Shown here: one piece after another, positions 1-17,285 of the stretch
How positions within the stretch are numbered: position 1 is the first letter of the stretch
Layout: each line of letters starts with the position of its first letter
Assembly (NCBI GenBank): GCA_016748015.1
Contig: JAAOMT010000431.1
Location: 1-17,285 of the forward strand
Direction: 5' to 3'
DNA: 17,285 nt
From: Geosiphon pyriformis uo1
Lineage: Eukaryota > Fungi > Glomeromycota
Position numbers and translations under genes: made by a program
The notes under the pieces: generated by a model
The model's input: the letters and a program-made list of their open reading frames with translations, nothing else
Told to the model about the DNA's origin: nothing
The model's database searches: none

Positions 1-261
1 TCTAGTAGTTCCAATCCCATGTTCTAAAGAAAAACCAAGTAAAATATTGTCTGTCGAACGTTTTGAACTTTTATTATTCAAGCAATTGAATAGTTCTTCA
101 GGTGTTTTCATATTGCGCATTAGGTATTTTTTCACAAAGTTGGCAACTTTTGAATATTCACTAGTTGGAGAATTGGCCAAATTTTCTCTGATGATAATTG
201 ACGCTCCTTCAAGCCAGTCGAGGTTTAAGGTTGCGTTTTCAAATGATGAAGTTGAAGACAT
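1..261 (-). CDS. 5' end (87 codons) of a Sel1-like repeat protein gene copy running off the left edge
   Basis: Inverted copy of 15366-15626: MSSTSSFENATLNLDWLEG...NILLGFSLEHGIGTTR, ATG at 261-259, open to position 1. Whether it continues into an SLR array cannot be seen. Confidence 0.8.
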   Translation of the reverse strand, partial: MSSTSSFENATLNLDWLEGASIIIRENLANSPTSEYSKVANFVKKYLMRNMKTPEELFNCLNNKSSKRSTDNILLGFSLEHGIGTTR

Positions 262-1006
262 GATTTTCAAATGACACAGATAAGTTAAAAACCTTGAATA
301 TTTTCTATGGGTAAAGAAAGATTTTTAACGAGTTCATCTTTGCTATTAAATAGGGATTTCAACTTATAATTTTTTAAATCACATTCCCAAGCAGGCTAGG
401 TCTTGGGAAAAATCTGAAACGCTGGAATATTCTGAAAATAAATTTTACTTCATAAAGGTTAGATTCCTTCATTTACATTGCTTAAATGGGCAAAAGGCGC
501 ACTATGCTTGTAATTATATCATCGCTATTTTTTTAAGTTACACTCTAGTTGGTGATTGCTGACGTCAATAGCTCATTGATAAATTTCTTTAAGATTTTCT
601 ATATGCATAATCTGGTTCTAAGGTTGCAGATCTTCTTTTCTAGCCCTAGCTGATTGGTAATAGCTCCAATAACAGGTTTAACATAATTCCTTCTTTCTCA
701 TTTATCTTTGAATTTGAGCGAGTAAATAAAACTAATTTAAGTATTAACGTGAAAATCCTAAGCCTTAACATTTAGCCTAAAACTTCATTTACTTATTTAT
801 ATTGAAGATCATCGAGAACAGGAATTCAAACTTAAATGACTGCAAAGATGCAAAAAGGCGAACTATGCATATTGCTATTTTTAGTTTAAATGAAAACTTA
901 AAATTGAGTTACATTTTGATTGGTGATTGCTGGTTTCAATAGCTCATTGATAAATTAGAGATTTTTCTAAATGCATAATTTAGTTTCAAAGTTGCATATG
1001 GTCTTC
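1..1006. repeat. Left arm of ~1 kb inverted repeat (may extend beyond the window start)
   Basis: Reverse complement of 14610-15626. By manual comparison 1-696 pairs with 14931-15626 with no mismatch or indel seen (coordinate sum constant at 15627). 697-1006 shows roughly a dozen substitutions and two small indels. Similarity stops after GTTGCATATGGTCTTC (1006). Confidence 0.97.
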
Positions 1007-1130
1007 GTTAGCCCAGCCGCTTTTTTTAATATCAGTGATAGCTTGATAACAAGTTTAATACAATTTCCCTTGACTCTCGCTTCCATAATGTTTATCTTGA
1101 ATTTCAACGAGTCTATAAACCCAATTTAAT
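481..1130. repeat. Degenerate tandem duplication (units ~481-745 and ~831-1130) upstream of the SLR gene
   Basis: Shared collinear blocks: CTTAAATG..CAAAA(A)GGCG.ACTATGC, TTGGTGATTGCTG...TCAATAGCTCATTGATAAATT, ATGCATAAT, GTTGCA, ATAACA.GTTTAA, TTTATCTT(T)GAATTT..CGAGT. Confidence 0.85.
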
Positions 1131-4797: not shown

Positions 4798-6678
4798 GTA
4801 GGCTGGAAGATAATATATTTTTTCAGACACAATTAAACGAAAAAAAAAGAATGGAATAATACTGAAAATACTTCACGTCTTAGAGCCTGTAACTGTCCTG
4901 GTTTGCTAACTTTTCATTTGGCCTTCCTCATATTTGTACTTCATTAGCCTGTTCTTTAAAAAGGTCAAAATCTCAGAAGAGAAGGGAAATTAGCAGGCAA
5001 ATTTCTTCAGCTCTTCCCACACCAACAATTCAAGAATTCAGAAATGTTTTTTCTCATTAAAAGTAAAAGTGACACTTTAATTCTTAAGGTGAAAGAACTA
5101 ATCAAAAAGACTTTCAACACATAATTAAAAATATTGAATATAATAAATTTATTATCTGGAAAGTTAATATTTCTTCTAACCAAAAAAATAAAATTAAGCA
5201 TCTCAGTCTCAATAAAGCAAACAGTCTAGATGAATTCAAATAATTAGTAAATATTAACTTAAAAAGTTTTTTCTTAAATATTTTCACACCATAATTAGAA
5301 TTATTCCTGATAAATAATTGATATTGGCTTTTTTTTTAATATCTCAATTTGTTTTAAACATCATATTTTTAAACATTGACTACTGGTGTGTTGAAAACTA
5401 CATTTTATATTATACATTTTTTTCTTATATATATTGATTAACAGTAAAAAAAATTTGGACCAAATATTAAAATATTCTTAAAAATGATTATTTATATGAA
5501 GAAGCTTAAATTCAAAATAAGTCTAATAATTTTTTAGATAGAACAAAATAATAAAATTTGAGCATTGATTATTTGTCAAAATTATATTGTAATAATAACT
5601 TTTATTTTGTTTTTAAATACTTATTTATTTGTATTATTCATTTTCTTAATTATTACAAACTAATTTTGAATATTGTTAAGATAAATTCTTTTTTAAAAAG
5701 TACATTAATTATTTTATATTAAATATTTTAATAATTCAAAACTTTGAATAATATGTTATTGAATTTATATTAACTTAATATTTTTAATAAGAATGAAAAT
5801 TTGTTTAACAGCATATTAATTACAATAAACTAAAGTTGATAATATATAATTATTATCGTAAATTAGGCATTAACAATTACAAAATTATTATTAATAATAA
5901 ATTTTATTTTTTTATTTCATTCTTAATTTAGAATTTGGCACTTATATTTATGCTTTATAAATAATAAGTAAAACTTCAAATGAGATTAGAAATATACAAA
6001 ATAAATAATATTAGCACATAAACATTTCAGATAACTTAGTTAATTAATTTTTAAAAACAAAATCTTTGGCAATTAATATTTATATAAGTTCAGTTTTTAA
6101 AACATCATATAATAATCTAAAAATCGGAAAAATCTTGTCAAAAAAAGGCACACTTTTAAATATAGACTTTTTAGTACACTGGCTGTTTTCTGTATAATAA
6201 TTTCATGTAAAATCAGCAGTTTTTTGGCTAGTTAAGCTAAATGTTACACCAAAACTGTTTTAATCCAATCAAAATTTTTTACCAAAAAGGACATCAATGT
6301 ACTTAATAGTACATTTGATTTTTCATTAAGCACAATTAGTAAACTCACAGAAGTTCTTTACAAAATGTTATGCATTGTTTGACACAACAGAACACCTATT
6401 TTAAAATACTTTTTTTTAATTTCAATCAGCAGCAAATACTCAAACTTGGTTATAGTACTGGCCTAATTTTTCAATCTCTTAAATATTCTTGTAACCAAAA
6501 ACTTTAAAATCTAAAATAAAAATTTTACCGTGTTAAATTAGCATATTTATCTATCTGCGAAAATCCAAACATTATTCAAAGAGGTAAATAGCTGGTGCAA
6601 CTAAAAAAACTTTTAAGCGATCATTCAGAAGCAGAAATTCACATAAATTATTTCAGGTATTAACTACTAAGTTATTAC

Positions 6679-6743
6679 CAATGAAGCAGTCAGTTATTGA
6701 GCAAAGAATAAAGTAATTATCAATGAAGCAGTCAGTTATTGAG
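6679..6743. repeat. Short direct repeat, 42-bp period
   Basis: CAATGAAGCAGTCAGTTATTGAG at 6679-6701 and 6721-6743. Confidence 0.9.
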
Positions 6744-7084
6744 AAATGAAACTTTCAAAAAAATAGTGAATACTGATTTTTTCTATTAAAAAAAAGGCTA
6801 TGTTGAACTCACGGAATAAGATACTCCCATAATCATACAGATATATGGATTTAGGAAGGATAATGAGAAATTTTACATAGGATCAATTATATTTTAACAT
6901 TGGGACAATATTAATTCTTTACTTTCTTTAAAAGACATCTATTCTCTTTGATGATCCAATTTTGGCTTTAGTGATTGTAAGACAACTTAAATTTAAATTG
7001 GCGTAAGATTTTAAATATTACACTAAATCAGGATTTTCAAATTAGGTTCGACAAAAACAATCTTTCGAAAGAGTTTTACTAATA

Positions 7085-8977: not shown

Positions 8978-9015
<38 letters not shown>

Positions 9016-9045
9016 TAATAATAATAATAATAATGATGATAATAA
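8978..9045. repeat. (AAT)n microsatellite with GAT interruptions
   Basis: About 22 trinucleotide units read directly. Confidence 0.97.
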
Positions 9046-9136
9046 AAATACGGGTTTATGGTTTTACTATAGATATCCAAAATCATTTTTAAAAATTCAG
9101 TTTTAATTTGTAAGGAATTTTTAATATCTTGATTAA

Positions 9137-11182
9137 ATAGCTTTCTTTTAAATCATCCTCATTATCACCCTCCTTATCTCTCTTTACCTTTATAAAACAA
9201 AATTATTAAAAGCACCAGGCCGGATTCCTATTTTTGGTAAGTTTTAGAAATTTTGCATTTTATCAATATTAACAAACCCCCTATGATATTCTATATCTTA
9301 AATTTTTTTTATTATAGGACATTTATTTTTAATAAGTCGGGATATCTATAAAAACGTAATTAGAATTTAATATTCTTTAGGTTACTATTAATTGTTTATT
9401 TTATTAAAAGACATTTTATTTAATCTAGGTACGCAGATTTAGGTGAAATATTTACAATTTACATTGGCCCTCAGCGCTTTATCATTCTAAACAGCGCTAA
9501 AAGTTGTTAACGAATCTTATTCAAAAACGTAAGTATACATTTTGAGATTCTACTCACTTAGAAATTTAATAAAATAGAAAAACTTTAATATTTAATTTTT
9601 AATAAGTGGTGCGATTTATTCCACTAATAAAATCACATATTTAAGCAAAACTTTCACACAAAATAAGAGTATAATCACCTTATAATGAGTGGTATCGAAG
9701 AGTGATGATATTTGGTAGGAGATTAATTAATCTATTGATTATTTTCATTTTTTTTTTAAAAAAATCTTGAAAAACTTGATATTAAATTGAAAATTTTTAA
9801 TATTCACTTTGATATCTCGTAACTTTTTAACTCAACAAAAAGTTGAATCGTATTATAACTTGATTGAAAAAGGCACCAATGACCTTCATAACAAAATTTT
9901 GAATGATTGCAACGAGCCCAACGGCATCGATCCTTACCATTAACTACGTTTCACCTCATTTAATATCATAATCAATGTCCTCTTTACAATCCAATTGAAA
10001 GATTTTAATGATCCACTTTATAAAAAATTAGAACAATGTTTTACAAAAACTCTCGAAATTTTGGCTTTAAAAAATGTGTTACCAAATTTATTCCCAATAT
10101 CATTTTCATTTCCTCCCTTTCGACAAGAGATCCCAAAACTTATCGAAACACGTAATGAATGGTAAAAAGTAACGGGAAACTTATTGAAAAGAGTAAAGGA
10201 TGATTCAGAAAAGAAATATTGTGTTTTTCGAGATTTTTTAGAGAAAATAATTCAAGGCTCCATTGATGAGTTGGGCGTTGTTAAATTGTGCAATTATTTT
10301 ATATTAGCAGGAACAGTTAGTTCAGAAATCTTATTTTATTAGATTAAAATCACTATTGTGACTCTGATAAATTCTTTGTCAATTCTAGGAAAGCGTAGCA
10401 TTTACTATATATTTGATTACTACAATTTTGGCAAATAATCCAAATTTTCAGCAGAAAGCGCACGAAGAATTAGACAGAGTAGTTGGAAATGAACGTTTAC
10501 CAAACATATCGGGACTTTAACTCACTTCCATATATCTGATCGCTAGTTAAAGAAGCTCTTTGTTGGGCTCCTCCAGTTAAGAAGCTTTTTTATAAGTTAT
10601 TTTTCCCCAAAATCAACTTATCTTTATATTAATCATTGTTCTATTATTATTATTAGAATCCAACACCACTGAGGTTTCTTGAACAAGATAATGATGAATA
10701 TTTAGGATATCATATACCAAATAATTCATGGTGTCTGCATGAATATTTTTGCGTTTAATTCAGACAAAAATCGTTATAAAGATCCCGACGTTTTCAATCC
10801 TGATCGGTTTCTTGATTCAAAAGAGAGTATGGCTACTTCGGGCAAGGGGTCCCTACCAAAATTGAGATCATTATTCTTTTTCAATTGGGAGACGACTTTG
10901 TACTGGAATTTACTTGGTAAGTTTTAATGATTCTTTTGTGTCTTCATATTATTTTCCCTCTAGATTTCTAAAAATAAATTTTATTTTTAATATGCTGAAG
11001 CGAAATTACTTTTTATTTTAAGTAGTCTACTTTGGACCTTTAAATTCGAAAACGTGAAATGAGATGTAACTGGAAGGGTTCTTCCAATTGATCTAAAAAA
11101 TTCGTTTAAAAGTATTCTTCAGACTCCTAATCCATACAATGTTCGATTCATTACTAGACATCAAGAAATTAAACCATTTTAA
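9137..11182 (+). pseudogene. Multi-exon cytochrome P450 pseudogene
   Basis: N-terminal membrane anchor plus Pro-rich APGRIPIFG, GEIFTIYIGPQRFIILNS, I-helix ILAGT, QQKAHEELDRVVGNERLP, K-helix KEALC (ExxR lost), FNPDRF, heme motif FSIGRRLCTG (10878-10907), C-terminal PYNVRFITR with stop at 11180-11182. Disablements: probable start is ATA, stops at 9149, 9941, 10163, 10537 and 11060, plus frameshifts. Confidence 0.93.
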
Positions 11183-11932: not shown

Positions 11933-13493
11933 TCAAAGTTTTGGATTAAAATTAGGGGTATTAATAAGGTTGGTGCAGTCTTCAAATATAGTTCCAAAAT
12001 AAGGGGTGTCATGGAAGCTTGTTCCTGTACCATCTGTCCCTAAATTACATTGCTGCAAAATGAGAAAAAATAAAATTGGTAAGCTTTATTGTTCTTAAAA
12101 TTATTAAAAAGTTTAACTAAAATAAGCAGACATACCAGACTTTCACCATATTGCTTTTGATTTTTATTTGAAAATCCTGGACATTCATAGACTATTGGCT
12201 CATTACAATCACAATCAATACTTTCAATCCAATACTCAGTCCCAGGGTGGATATATGGTACACCCGTTGGGGAATATTTCGGGAAATGAGGGAAAAATTC
12301 GTTAGTATATGTAATTCTAAACATCTTAAGTTTATTACTTCGCTTATTGATTTGTTCAGCAAGTTGATAATTCCCTGGACGTGAAGAACCAAAGGTGACA
12401 ACGTGAATGTAAACATTTTCATCAACAGGTGAGAAAGCCAGGAGTAAAAAGCCTAATATTTGAGCATAGACTAAGTGGAGTAATAAATTAATAGTTCGAA
12501 TTTTAATTTAAAATATATTTAAAAATTTTTAAGAGGAAAATATTGACTTTCTAAAATTTCTTACATCCTCCAACTCTATGCCCAGTCAGATAAATATCGA
12601 TTCGTTGATTTGATCCCATTCCATTTCTAATTCCGTTAATTCCATGTTTTATTAAACTTGTAAAAGCTTTACAATATTGATCTTTTAACATTGTCCACCA
12701 ATCCGAATTAACTTTAAAATAACCCTTGGCTCTTAATTTTAACATTTGAAACTTGGTAGTTTCTAATTGTATTTTGTTTATTTTAGGCCCTAATTTTTCA
12801 GAGAAATAGGCAAAAATGTTAAAAATTATTATTGATCCATAAAATAGTTTTTGATTATTAAAAAAAAAAAAGGAGTAATATTTTTGTTGAGAAAGAAAGA
12901 AAGAAAGAAAGAAACCTTTCCAAAACTTACCGCCAAAAGATCCAATAATGATTGGAATTTGTGGATTGTGTGCAACATGAGCTGATAAATTAAGAAGTAT
13001 GATGGTGAAATTTTTTATATTGAAAATTTTTTGTTTTTTTACACCCTATCTTACCAATAAATCCTGGACCTGATATTGAAGCCTTAGCACAATAAGCAAG
13101 ATTTGCCCACATAGCCATTTTAGTAAAAAGTGTTAAAAGGCCTTTATCTTTTAATAACGTCTTGGGTGGGGTAATATTTTCATTAAAATTAAATCCATTC
13201 TTAGCTCTTGAAAAGAGTAATTTCTTTTCATGATCGTCTTCATATATTTCTTCTTGATGAGTAAAATTAAATTTTAATTTGGGTAACAGTTTGTATTCTA
13301 TTGAATTTAAATTGTATGAGATGGAAGTGGTTTTTCTTAAAAATTTATTATAATAATCTTTGAAAAATGTCAAAAAATTAAATAAAATGTAAAACAAAAA
13401 AAGTGTTTGAATAATTTTTTTTCCTATAATTTTTTTAGACGAACAAATGTAGTTATGATTTAAAATCATTTTTTGATAAAAATTATATTTCAT
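11933..13493 (-). CDS. Class 3 lipase-like (alpha/beta hydrolase) protein, predicted catalytically inactive. Exons 13493-13055, 12981-12931, 12789-12565, 12470-12136, 12052-11933
   Basis: Four GT..AG introns with compatible phases give an open frame: WANLAYC, IIIGSFGG, IYLTGHRVGG (GHSxGG position), VVTFGSSRPGN, FRITYTNEFFPHFP, YIHPGTEYWI, FHDTPYFG. The 5' end and start codon are uncertain; a further intron near 13365-13425 is possible. Confidence 0.85.
12891..12914. repeat. (GAAA)6 microsatellite in intron 2 of the lipase-like gene
   Basis: Read directly. Confidence 0.95.
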
Positions 13494-14609
13494 CAAGTTT
13501 ATTGAAAAATGTGGTCTTCAAACATTTATTTTATACATGTGAATGAAACAGCGGATTATCTTGATCAAGAAAATGAAATAACATTGACAATCTGTATGTA
13601 AACACTAAAATTAACAATAAAAATTAGAACAAAACCGTTCTCCATTTATATATAAACAGTATTGTCGAATGTATATTTCGTCTTTTTGACCTAGAATTTG
13701 TTTTATTTTGATAATTTTAATTAAAAAAAAAGGAAATCAATTCAGTTCTTTTTATATTTATTCCAAGAGAAATTTGAAATTTTAAACCTTATATGCAGGA
13801 TCATATTTTCAAAGAAAAGAATTTCATTTATAATTTACATGTAAATCAATCAAATTCTTTGTAATTCTTTGTAATTCTTTGGCATTTTTTGTTATAAGAA
13901 ATCTGATTTCTTAAAGTTTTTAGAATTCTTTCATTGATTGATATTCTGTATAAAATAATTTTAATATGAAATTGCTTCATTGAAGAAATTTACAATATGA
14001 AAAATATTTCAAATTTATTAATGTTGATTTCATTAAAATTTAAAAACTATAAAGAATTTTTGTTTAAATTATCAGCAATTAAGAAAACACACATTAATAA
14101 ATCTTTTGCATTCGATTCAAATTTGTTTACCATTGAGAAACTTAATTTCCAAATCATATCTTTTGATATGTGAAAATCATAACATTAGAAATAGTTTTTT
14201 CCGTGGGAATTTTTCTCAAACCCGTGATCCCACTTTATCATGTTGACATAATCTGACCGATATGGTTTAGCGTATACTAATCAAACCATTTTCTTGTAAA
14301 AAAATATTTAAACTCTCTTACAAAATTAAATTAAATCTATAATAATATACAAGCAAATCTTTATAAATTACACAAATGTAAAAGCCCAATTAGAGAATAG
14401 TCTATAAAACACCTGACACAGAATTTTATCGTAATTTTATGTCTCATTTAAGGTAATCACAACACTTTCAATTCAAAACCTTTGATCTTCTTAATACGTG
14501 ATTATAGGAATAAATTAATTATTGCCAGCTAAAACTAAATCTATGCAAGATCGAGATATTTCTCTTGCTGTTCCAAAATTAATTTGCATGAGATATAAAA
14601 ATAAATAAG

Positions 14610-15626
14610 GAAGACCATATGCAACCTAGAAACTAAATTATGCATATAGAAAAATCTCAAAGAAATTTATCAATGAGCTATTGAAACCAGCAATCACCAA
14701 TCAAAATGTAACTCAATTTTAAGTTTTCATTTAAACTAAAAATAGCAATATGCATAGTTCGCCTTTTTGCATCTTTGCAGTCATTTAAGTTTGAATTCCC
14801 GTTCTCGAAGATCTTCAATATAAATAAGTAAATAAGGTTTTAGGCTAAATGTTAAGGCTTAGGTTTTTCACGTTAATTATTAATATTTAAATTAGTTTTA
14901 TTTACTCGCTGAAATTAAAAGATAAATGAAAAAGAAGGAATTATGTTAAACCTGTTATTGGAGCTATTACCAATCAGCTAGGGCTAGAAAAGAAGATCTG
15001 CAACCTTAGAACCAGATTATGCATATAGAAAATCTTAAAGAAATTTATCAATGAGCTATTGACGTCAGCAATCACCAACTAGAGTGTAACTTAAAAAAAT
15101 AGCGATGATATAATTACAAGCATAGTGCGCCTTTTGCCCATTTAAGCAATGTAAATGAAGGAATCTAACCTTTATGAAGTAAAATTTATTTTCAGAATAT
15201 TCCAGCGTTTCAGATTTTTCCCAAGACCTAGCCTGCTTGGGAATGTGATTTAAAAAATTATAAGTTGAAATCCCTATTTAATAGCAAAGATGAACTCGTT
15301 AAAAATCTTTCTTTACCCATAGAAAATATTCAAGGTTTTTAACTTATCTGTGTCATTTGAAAATCATGTCTTCAACTTCATCATTTGAAAACGCAACCTT
15401 AAACCTCGACTGGCTTGAAGGAGCGTCAATTATCATCAGAGAAAATTTGGCCAATTCTCCAACTAGTGAATATTCAAAAGTTGCCAACTTTGTGAAAAAA
15501 TACCTAATGCGCAATATGAAAACACCTGAAGAACTATTCAATTGCTTGAATAATAAAAGTTCAAAACGTTCGACAGACAATATTTTACTTGGTTTTTCTT
15601 TAGAACATGGGATTGGAACTACTAGA
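14610..15626. repeat. Right arm of ~1 kb inverted repeat
   Basis: Reverse complement of 1-1006. Begins GAAGACCATATGCAAC at 14610. The outer limit is set by the window edge on the left arm. Confidence 0.97.
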
Positions 15627-17285
15627 GATTTAAAAAAAGCATTTTTAGAATTTCAGAAAGCAGCAAATGCAGAAGATTCTGTTGGACAATTCTTTTTAGG
15701 CTATTGTTACAGCAATGGAATTGGTGTTTCACAAGATCGAAGAAAAGCATTTAAACTCTATTTAAAAGCAGCAGAGACGGGTAATACAAATGCACAATAC
15801 AATCTTGCAACATGTTATCGAAATGGATGGGGAACAACGAAAAACTTTGAAAAAGCATTTGAACTCTATTCAAAAGCAGCAGAGGCGGGAAATACAGATG
15901 CACAATGCAATCTTGGATGGTGTATTCAAAATGGATGGGGAACAACGAAAAACTTTGAAAAAGCATTTGAACTCTATTCAAAAGCAGCAGAGGCGGGAAA
16001 TACATATGCACAATTAAGTCTTGGACTTTGTTATGAAATTGGATGGGGAATAACGAAAAACTTTGAAAAAGCATTTGAACTGTATGCAAAAGCAGCAGAG
16101 GCGGGAAATACAGATGCACAATGTAATCTTGGATTTTGTTATCAAAATGGATGGGGAATAACGAAAAACTTTGAAAAAGCATTTGAACTGTATGCAAAAG
16201 CAGCAGAGGCGGGAAATACAAATGCACAATGCCATCTTGGATGGTGTTATCGAAATGGATGGGGAACAACGAAAAACTTAGAAAAAGCATTTGAACTGTA
16301 TTCAAAACCAGCAGAGACGGGAAATACAGATGCACAATATAATCTTGGACGGTGTTATCAAAATGGATGGGGAACAACGAAAAACTTAGAAAAAGCATTT
16401 GAACTCTATTCAAAAGCAGCAGAGGCGGGAAATAAATATGCACAATCAAATCTTGGACTTTGTTATGAAAATGGATGGGGAACAACGAAAAACTTAGAAA
16501 AAGCATTTGAACTGTATTCAAAAGCAGCAGAGACGGGAAATACAGATGCACAATATAATCTTGGACGGTGTTATCAAAATGGATGGGGAATAACGAAAAA
16601 CTTTGAAAAAGCATTTGAACTGTATGCAAAAGCAGCAGAGGCGGGAAATACAAATGCACAATACAATCTTGCAAGATGTTATCGAAATGGATGTGGAACA
16701 ACGAAAAACTTAGAAAAAGCATTTAAACTCTATTCAAAAGCAGTAGAGGCGGGAAATAAACTGGCACAATACAATCTTGCAAGATGTTATCGAAATGGAT
16801 GTGGAACAACAAAAAACTTTGAAAAAGCATTTGAACTCTATTCAAAAGCAGCAGAGACGGGAAATACACTGGCACAATCAAATCTTGGACGGTGCTATGA
16901 AAATGGATGGGGAATAACGAAAAACTTTGAAAAAGCATTTGAACTCTATTCAAAAGCAGCAGAAACGGGAAATACAGATGTACAATATAATCTTGGACGG
17001 TGTTATGAAAATGGATGGGGAATAACGAAAAACTTTGAAAAAGCATTTGAACTGTATTCAAAAGCAACAGAGACCGGAAATACAGATGCACAATATAATC
17101 TTGGACGGTGTTATGAAAATGGATGGGGAACAACAAAAAACTTTGAAAAAGCATTTGATTTCTATTCAAAAGCAGCAGAGGCGGGAGATACACAGGCACA
17201 ATATAAGCTTGGACTTTGTTATGAAAATGGATGGGGAATAACGAAAAACTTAGAAAAAGCATTTAAACTCTATTCAAAAGCAGCA
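15366..17285 (+). CDS. Sel1-like repeat (SLR/TPR-like) protein, >=640 aa, 3'-partial, no intron in the visible part
   Basis: ATG at 15366 (in-frame TAA at 15300), open to the window end. ~75-aa N-terminal region, two divergent SLR units, then 14 highly similar units of consensus GNTxAQxxLGxCYxNGWGxTKNxEKAFELYSKAAEA, matching the canonical Sel1 pattern A..LG..Y..G.G...D...A...Y..AA..G. Confidence 0.96.
   Translation, partial: MSSTSSFENATLNLDWLEGASIIIRENLANSPTSEYSKVANFVKKYLMRNMKTPEELFNCLNNKSSKRSTDNILLGFSLEHGIGTTRDLKKAFLEFQKAANAEDSVGQFFLGYCYSNGIGVSQDRRKAFKLYLKAAETGNTNAQYNLATCYRNGWGTTKNFEKAFELYSKAAEAGNTDAQCNLGWCIQNGWGTTKNFEKAFELYSKAAEAGNTYAQLSLGLCYEIGWGITKNFEKAFELYAKAAEAGNTDAQCNLGFCYQNGWGITKNFEKAFELYAKAAEAGNTNAQCHLGWCYRNGWGTTKNLEKAFELYSKPAETGNTDAQYNLGRCYQNGWGTTKNLEKAFELYSKAAEAGNKYAQSNLGLCYENGWGTTKNLEKAFELYSKAAETGNTDAQYNLGRCYQNGWGITKNFEKAFELYAKAAEAGNTNAQYNLARCYRNGCGTTKNLEKAFKLYSKAVEAGNKLAQYNLARCYRNGCGTTKNFEKAFELYSKAAETGNTLAQSNLGRCYENGWGITKNFEKAFELYSKAAETGNTDVQYNLGRCYENGWGITKNFEKAFELYSKATETGNTDAQYNLGRCYENGWGTTKNFEKAFDFYSKAAEAGDTQAQYKLGLCYENGWGITKNLEKAFKLYSKAA
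15780..17285 (+). repeat. 108-bp coding tandem array, 14 units (last truncated by the window), no indels
   Basis: The xAAAAAGCATTT motif recurs exactly every 108 bp: 15633, 15741, 15849 ... 17253. Confidence 0.98.

Follow-up and report, generated by a model that had tools for sequence, protein, structure and literature searches.

What selects, or fails to select, for variation confined to one face of an otherwise nearly uniform tandem array of Sel1 repeats? This question is raised by a locus of Geosiphon pyriformis uo1 (Glomeromycota; contig JAAOMT010000431.1), of which a stretch of 17 285 nucleotides, hereafter called the window, was analysed. Its right-hand part (15366..17285, + strand) is an open reading frame of at least 640 codons, which starts at ATG 15366, is free of stops and of any apparent intron in translation and is still open at the window end. 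The frame represents the 5′ part of a probable cap–Sel1–kinase gene, its start agreeing with the starts of paralogs. It begins with an N-terminal helical cap (15366..15563, +), typical of a Geosiphon family and devoid of hydrophobic signal or membrane segment, followed by two divergent Sel1 units (15564..15779, +) that are not homogenised with the array and by the array proper, 14 homogenised 108-bp Sel1 units (15780..17285, +), the last of which is cut at 34 codons. Pfam Sel1 (PF08238) matches the window protein over 15 stretches (573 bits, E 2e-178), with 36-residue helix–turn–helix units above the Pfam cut-off as in Sel1-like repeat (SLR) proteins, and SLR structures head both the sequence and the fold searches. 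Neither a signal peptide nor a membrane helix was found in the window protein (hydropathy maximum 0.54), and in the paralogs the hydropathy maxima fall within the kinase domain, with no membrane helix evident ahead of it. Secretion was rejected since there is no hydrophobic signal, and the protein was not assigned to the transmembrane receptor kinases because both signal peptide and membrane helix are absent. It is probably a cytoplasmic sensor, encoded by the 5′ part of a Sel1-repeat kinase gene. A metagenome scan returned only distant Sel1 matches, and an Atlas search with the cap gave leads below 0.9 only.

The array has a period of 108 with 90% matches up to the window end (Tandem Repeats Finder) and consists of 13 full units plus the 34-codon unit. 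An original prediction, made from the sequence alone, described 14 near-identical in-frame units, and this is what is found: the mean pairwise DNA identity is 89.1%, although no two units are alike. Divergence reaches 33.9% over six codons (positions 4, 7, 8, 11, 14 and 15, called groove codons for reasons given below) versus 6.3% over the 30 scaffold codons. In unit 1, the helix-A stretch with variable codons 4, 7, 8, 11 and 14 lies at 15789..15821 (+), and its offsets come back every 108 bp along the array. The residue strings read earlier for these five positions match the translation exactly, and 12 distinct five-residue combinations occur among the 14 units. The description of five strongly variable codons can be refined, given that position 8 is Asn in 11 of the 14 units, the other three being singletons, and that positions 3, 10, 17, 19, 23, 28, 31 and 36 are polymorphic too, each mostly with two states. 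At the interleaved codons 5, 6, 9 and 10, no variation occurs in the third position. Helix A spans unit positions 3–14 in the structure model, and variability along it is one-sided, as had been proposed (helical moment R = 0.59, permutation p = 0.0007). In 34 homologs with homogenised arrays, from Rhizophagus, Diversispora, a chytrid and bacteria among others, the largest shares of variability are likewise at positions 4, 7, 11 and 14. Homogenised Sel1 arrays with variation at similar positions were also observed in bacteria or a bacterial-looking contig, namely a kinase–Sel1 array in a metagenome contig (L007 6001-8736), a caspase–Sel1 array in Nibrella (P0164) and an array in Nitratireductor (P0083).

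Grouping of the scaffold sequences follows the gene of origin (8 label changes versus 27.9 when shuffled). By the four-gamete criterion, 51 of 91 informative site pairs are incompatible (Rm = 6), and adjacency within the array brings no clear gain in similarity between units (p = 0.07). The units are homogenised within the gene, as predicted, and recombinant. Concerted evolution and reshuffling of units, both characteristic of high-internal-conservation (HiC) repeats, are found in the window array. Its 89% mean DNA identity over 14 units can be set beside the HiC threshold of at least 85% over 100 residues only with the proviso that the threshold is an amino-acid one (PMC4986451), amino-acid values in paralogs being 0.77–0.84. 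Geosiphon is represented by a single assembly, and the cluster members of the Rhizophagus genes are mostly fragments.

The units of the array form an alpha-solenoid in which the first helices line a groove. Unit position 4 aligns with Pfam Sel1 position 2, and the alignment thus equates window positions 4, 7, 8, 11, 14 and 15 with Sel1/TPR positions 2, 5, 6, 9, 12 and 13. In HOP TPR co-crystals, these TPR positions contact the peptide, with Asn6 anchoring its backbone (PMC1261162). The best PDB match of the window protein is c5321 (4BWR), in which helix 1 is on the concave face and a peptide-like crystal contact is made via T306, A309, N310, A313 and R317 (PMC3851747); these residues align with window positions 4, 7, 8, 11 and 15. 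As judged by alignment, the variable positions coincide with TPR ligand-contact positions and, mostly, with the c5321 contacts. This agrees with the earlier placement of the variable sites at the concave groove of a TPR/SLR solenoid: they map to groove contacts, a mapping made by alignment to solved structures and not on coordinates of the single-sequence model (pLDDT 61).

The protein collection contains no exact counterpart of the window protein. The nearest relatives of the window gene are G. pyriformis paralogs (60–75% identity over residues 1–130; 75–84% DNA identity), and the gene shows the mark of the Geosiphon cap–Sel1–kinase family, namely a Sel1 array preceded by the N-terminal cap specific to that family. 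A kinase follows the array in 20 cap-bearing paralogs, including every one with at least 8 units, and for two short paralog models that were checked, a kinase model comes next on the same strand, immediately downstream (gene models were used as annotated, no spliced models being joined). A linker with CxxC...CxxC motifs, one or two in number, is present in most of the kinase-bearing paralogs and is modelled poorly. The paralog kinases mostly keep VALK, HGD and DLG motifs, adopt a TK/TKL fold like tyrosine kinases in fold comparison and have the catalytic Lys and Asp in place; from their sequences they look catalytic and non-RD. No kinase is visible anywhere in the window, and kinase exons upstream of the array were rejected since no kinase sequence occurs there. 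Because paralogs carry a kinase after the array, the window very probably ends before a downstream kinase, the gene being a truncated Sel1–kinase. NACHT or NB-ARC domains are absent from the window protein, from paralog P0001 and from the Pfam lists of 60 homologs. The statement that no NACHT/NB-ARC or kinase domain lies upstream of the array is therefore literally true, but it misleads, for the kinase sits downstream in paralogs; the kinase-free architecture that it implied is contradicted by close paralogs, in which cap and Sel1 array are followed by a Cys-rich linker and, at the C-terminus, a kinase. The array–kinase order is the same in Diversispora and Gigaspora and is reversed in most Rhizophagus matches. 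Some family members (L017 5001-8216 and L018 5001-7481) are broken by stops or frameshifts, with no assembly gaps, so that each is annotated as two or three models; they are possible pseudogenes. At another paralog locus (L003 18159-20652, − strand), a gene with an MLKL_N-like region (weak, E 3e-5), a kinase and Sel1 repeats faces a cap–Sel1–kinase gene. MLKL-like proteins have been noted in Glomeromycotina (PMC8778642), and that the Sel1 kinases are functionally linked to such proteins encoded in the same genome is a guess.

How might such a gene work? Recombination among units of one gene keeps the scaffold close to uniform, while at the groove codons many variants persist and are reshuffled. 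As in paralogs, the gene would continue through a Cys-rich linker to a tyrosine-kinase-like domain of the non-RD type. By analogy, the diversity of the groove would be kept by selection, its ligands being extended peptides that vary and are probably foreign or strain-specific, and ligand binding would switch the kinase. This recognition role, in which a groove that binds such peptides controls the kinase, is accordingly an analogical reading, to which we give a probability of about 0.55. Counting against it, variable grooves are common to TPR/SLR families in general and are also seen in bacterial homogenised arrays. It is conceivable, if rather unlikely, that selection on the groove favours new specificities towards proteins of the fungus itself, with no role in non-self recognition, the partners or substrates belonging to its expanded families of kinase, BTB and Sel1 proteins. 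Such diversified endogenous signalling would suit a cytoplasmic protein and the groove variation that TPR families with different ligands ordinarily show, and two reports describe these three families as signalling genes that have expanded (PMC6123716, PMC8647823). Against it speaks the fact that the diversity is kept between units within a single, recently homogenised gene, repeatedly across several genes and species, and that the same within-gene pattern is tied to recognition conflicts in Podospora.

Both readings require selection at the groove codons. The six-codon set 4/7/8/11/14/15 is defined from the literature but overlaps the sites first picked from the window array, for which reason the paralogs serve as the independent test. 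Changes were counted as tree-free minima, tree-based values being inflated by recombination, and our own codon-count and maximum likelihood (ML) scripts were used in place of PAML/HyPhy. In the window, the groove shows 18 replacements on 13.0 sites, 3.0 times the array-wide synonymous rate (p = 0.002), and codons outside the groove give a ratio to synonymous change of 0.59. The groove ratio is 2.4 in five pooled Geosiphon paralogs (p = 1e-5), 1.85 in a Diversispora gene (p = 0.056) and about 1, by counts, in the metagenomic L007 array. The cleanest selection signal among the genes examined comes from a Rhizophagus clarus kinase–Sel1 gene (L019 4660-5523; 8 units, 90% identity), with a groove ratio of 6.5 (p = 1e-5) and 20 groove replacements to 2 synonymous changes. 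Codon ML gives the window groove a ratio of 4.3–4.9, which the addition of a CpG term leaves unchanged, and flags positions 4, 7, 11 and 14, and also 23 and 36.

Could exposed groove codons that are simply unconstrained or locally hypermutable, combined with repeat turnover, yield this pattern with no selection for recognition? We consider this improbable, even though the window array taken by itself lends it some weight. Synonymous change there is also raised, with 6 changes on 3.9 sites in groove codons versus 6 on 22.2 elsewhere (1.54 versus 0.27 per site), so that replacement and synonymous rates in the groove are alike (1.38 and 1.54 per site); this synonymous excess is larger than expected from dN/dS > 1 alone (p about 0.02). 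When the groove is given a rate of its own, dN/dS > 1 is not significant in the window (p = 0.61) and has modest support in paralogs (p = 0.027). The window is fitted slightly better by a model with faster codons and dN/dS = 1 than by one with selection, the scaffold ratio of 0.6–0.75 indicating weak purifying selection. As synonymous change is raised at the same codons, dN/dS > 1 is unproven by the window array alone. On the other side, relaxed constraint as the sole cause is rejected, for 18 replacements were never reached in neutral free-recombination simulations (1200 runs at each of four rates). CpG decay fails since the CpG term leaves the excess in place, as does retroelement-type adenine mutagenesis, 10 of 44 A sites being variable versus 27 of 64 others; without adenine-specific variation, the array is no target of a diversity-generating retroelement. 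A mutational hotspot would need helical periodicity, because the interleaved third positions do not vary, and the R. clarus counts speak against the absence of selection as well. As to the expected dN/dS > 1 at positions 4/7/8/11/14, there is a roughly threefold excess over the array-wide synonymous rate, beyond neutral simulation and repeated in paralogs and R. clarus; once the groove rate is free, dN/dS > 1 is unsupported in the window and modestly supported in paralogs. For selection at binding-surface codons of the HiC type, the excess over the synonymous rate is seen, whereas a faster or older codon history is not separated from it in the window and is modestly separated in paralogs. The simplest reading is that old variants were retained or imported at groove codons while the scaffold was homogenised, because the window gene and paralog L001 share two or three codons at each of positions 7, 8, 11 and 14 despite fixed differences at 19 and 22. 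Retained groove variants are the pattern expected of balancing selection, though a codon-local mutational process may also produce it.

The reliability of the array itself has to be considered in view of an inverted duplication. The right arm (14606..15626, +) comprises the 5′ flank and the first 87 codons of the gene; the left arm (1..1010, − strand) is its inverted copy at 97.6% identity and includes a second gene start (ATG at 261, minus strand), whose gene runs off the left window end before reaching its array. Identity between the arms steps from about 92–95% distally to 100% over the proximal 696 bases (14931-15626), which suggests that the copies were recently converted or that the assembly has collapsed them. 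Within and beside the inverted arms, at 904-1148, a 100–240-bp flank element is present in older, diverged copies. Elsewhere, inspection by eye revealed cytochrome P450-like coding pieces with shifting frames at ~9200-11180 (+), including a heme motif piece near 10866, which look like a frameshifted pseudogene, and exons like those of a class 3 lipase at ~11950-13440 (−); Lipase_3 genes also occur near paralogs L002 and L003. An AAT microsatellite (8978-9050) and a 42-bp tandem pair (6669-6750) complete the picture. If the array were a collapsed mosaic of two or more inverted gene copies, its variation would be inflated and its unit order scrambled. The duplicated gene start with its 696 identical bases, the breaks of both window ends inside a cap–Sel1 gene and the scaffold gaps inside the Sel1 arrays of two paralogs would fit such an artefact, which is nonetheless quite improbable: all units differ, the longest exact in-register match being 94 bp, the reading frame is intact over 1.9 kb, the units of the window group together, and the same positions vary in paralogs free of gaps that come from three assemblies. 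In addition, one DNA run, possibly of the source sample, contains 64% of the sampled words of 13000-17285; run X2 (RNA only as a guess) contains 24%. The family-wide variability pattern is independent of unit order in the window gene.

A modular nucleic-acid reader of PPR/TALE type, with one unit per base, is very improbable, for despite near-identical units, few code-like positions, several Arg and weak matches to designed PPR proteins, the best sequence and fold matches are SLR proteins and the groove Asn at position 8 corresponds to the residue by which TPR/SLR proteins anchor the peptide backbone.

Should the recognition reading hold, its wider form can be stated tentatively: Glomeromycota may possess a repertoire of receptor kinases that are cytoplasmic and NOD-free, that owe the diversity of their Sel1 arrays to unit shuffling and selection, that serve non-self recognition and that possibly signal to MLKL-like proteins of the same genomes, with other fungi, endobacteria and Nostoc as candidate non-self. 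Such a repertoire would explain part of the large kinase and Sel1 expansions of Glomeromycota, would give a concrete hypothesis for why mycorrhizal-type fungi retain these families and for self/non-self discrimination in coenocytic symbionts, testable on existing Rhizophagus long-read genomes, and would extend the Podospora mechanism of repeat diversification beyond NLRs to Sel1 kinases. That a chytrid and bacteria, too, have homogenised arrays which vary at similar positions suggests that the design is a general one.

Several known systems invite comparison. The SLR proteins c5321 (4BWR), HcpC and Helicobacter slr share the fold and groove contacts of the window array (PMC3851747, PMC1941758), and positive selection on SLR surfaces has a precedent; these are, however, secreted bacterial proteins with divergent units, and selection was measured between strains, not between the homogenised units of a single gene. 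In plants and animals, immune receptor kinases of the non-RD type combine a variable repeat sensor with the kinase (PMC8463890), as do the Geosiphon paralogs, but the window gene has Sel1 instead of LRR units and lacks signal peptide and membrane helix. The window gene shares lineage and domains with the tyrosine-kinase-like and Sel1 families of Glomeromycota, for which expansion and methylation are reported in the available parts of PMC6123716 and PMC8647823, where unit homogenisation or groove diversification is not among the findings; nor was a report of homogenised, groove-diversified Sel1 arrays in Glomeromycota found in the open literature, subscription papers lying outside this coverage. 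Kinase–Sel1 fusions occur in Rhizophagus and Sel1–kinase fusions in Diversispora and Gigaspora, the Geosiphon subfamily differing by its own cap, its array-first order and its non-RD loop, whereas the Rhizophagus examples checked are RD. In Podospora HET-E/HET-D and the TPR/ANK NLRs, repeats more than 85% identical evolve in concert and are diversified at few residues of the binding surface (PMC1805685, PMC4986451), which in TPR NLR repeats lie on the concave helix face. The window array resembles these fungal HiC-repeat NLRs in its near-identical repeats, concerted evolution and few diversified binding-surface residues, and the analogy drawn by the original prediction is in this respect sound. 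It differs in being made of Sel1 units, in lacking NACHT/NB-ARC and a known incompatibility phenotype, and in that its units cluster mostly by gene, unlike those of the Podospora family. Moreover, fungal NLRs have an N-terminal effector and C-terminal repeats, while in Geosiphon paralogs the array is N-terminal and the kinase C-terminal; membership among fungal NLRs is rejected on account of this reversed order and the missing NACHT/NB-ARC. The window gene belongs to the Glomeromycota Sel1/kinase expansion and displays NLR-like repeat evolution without being an NLR.
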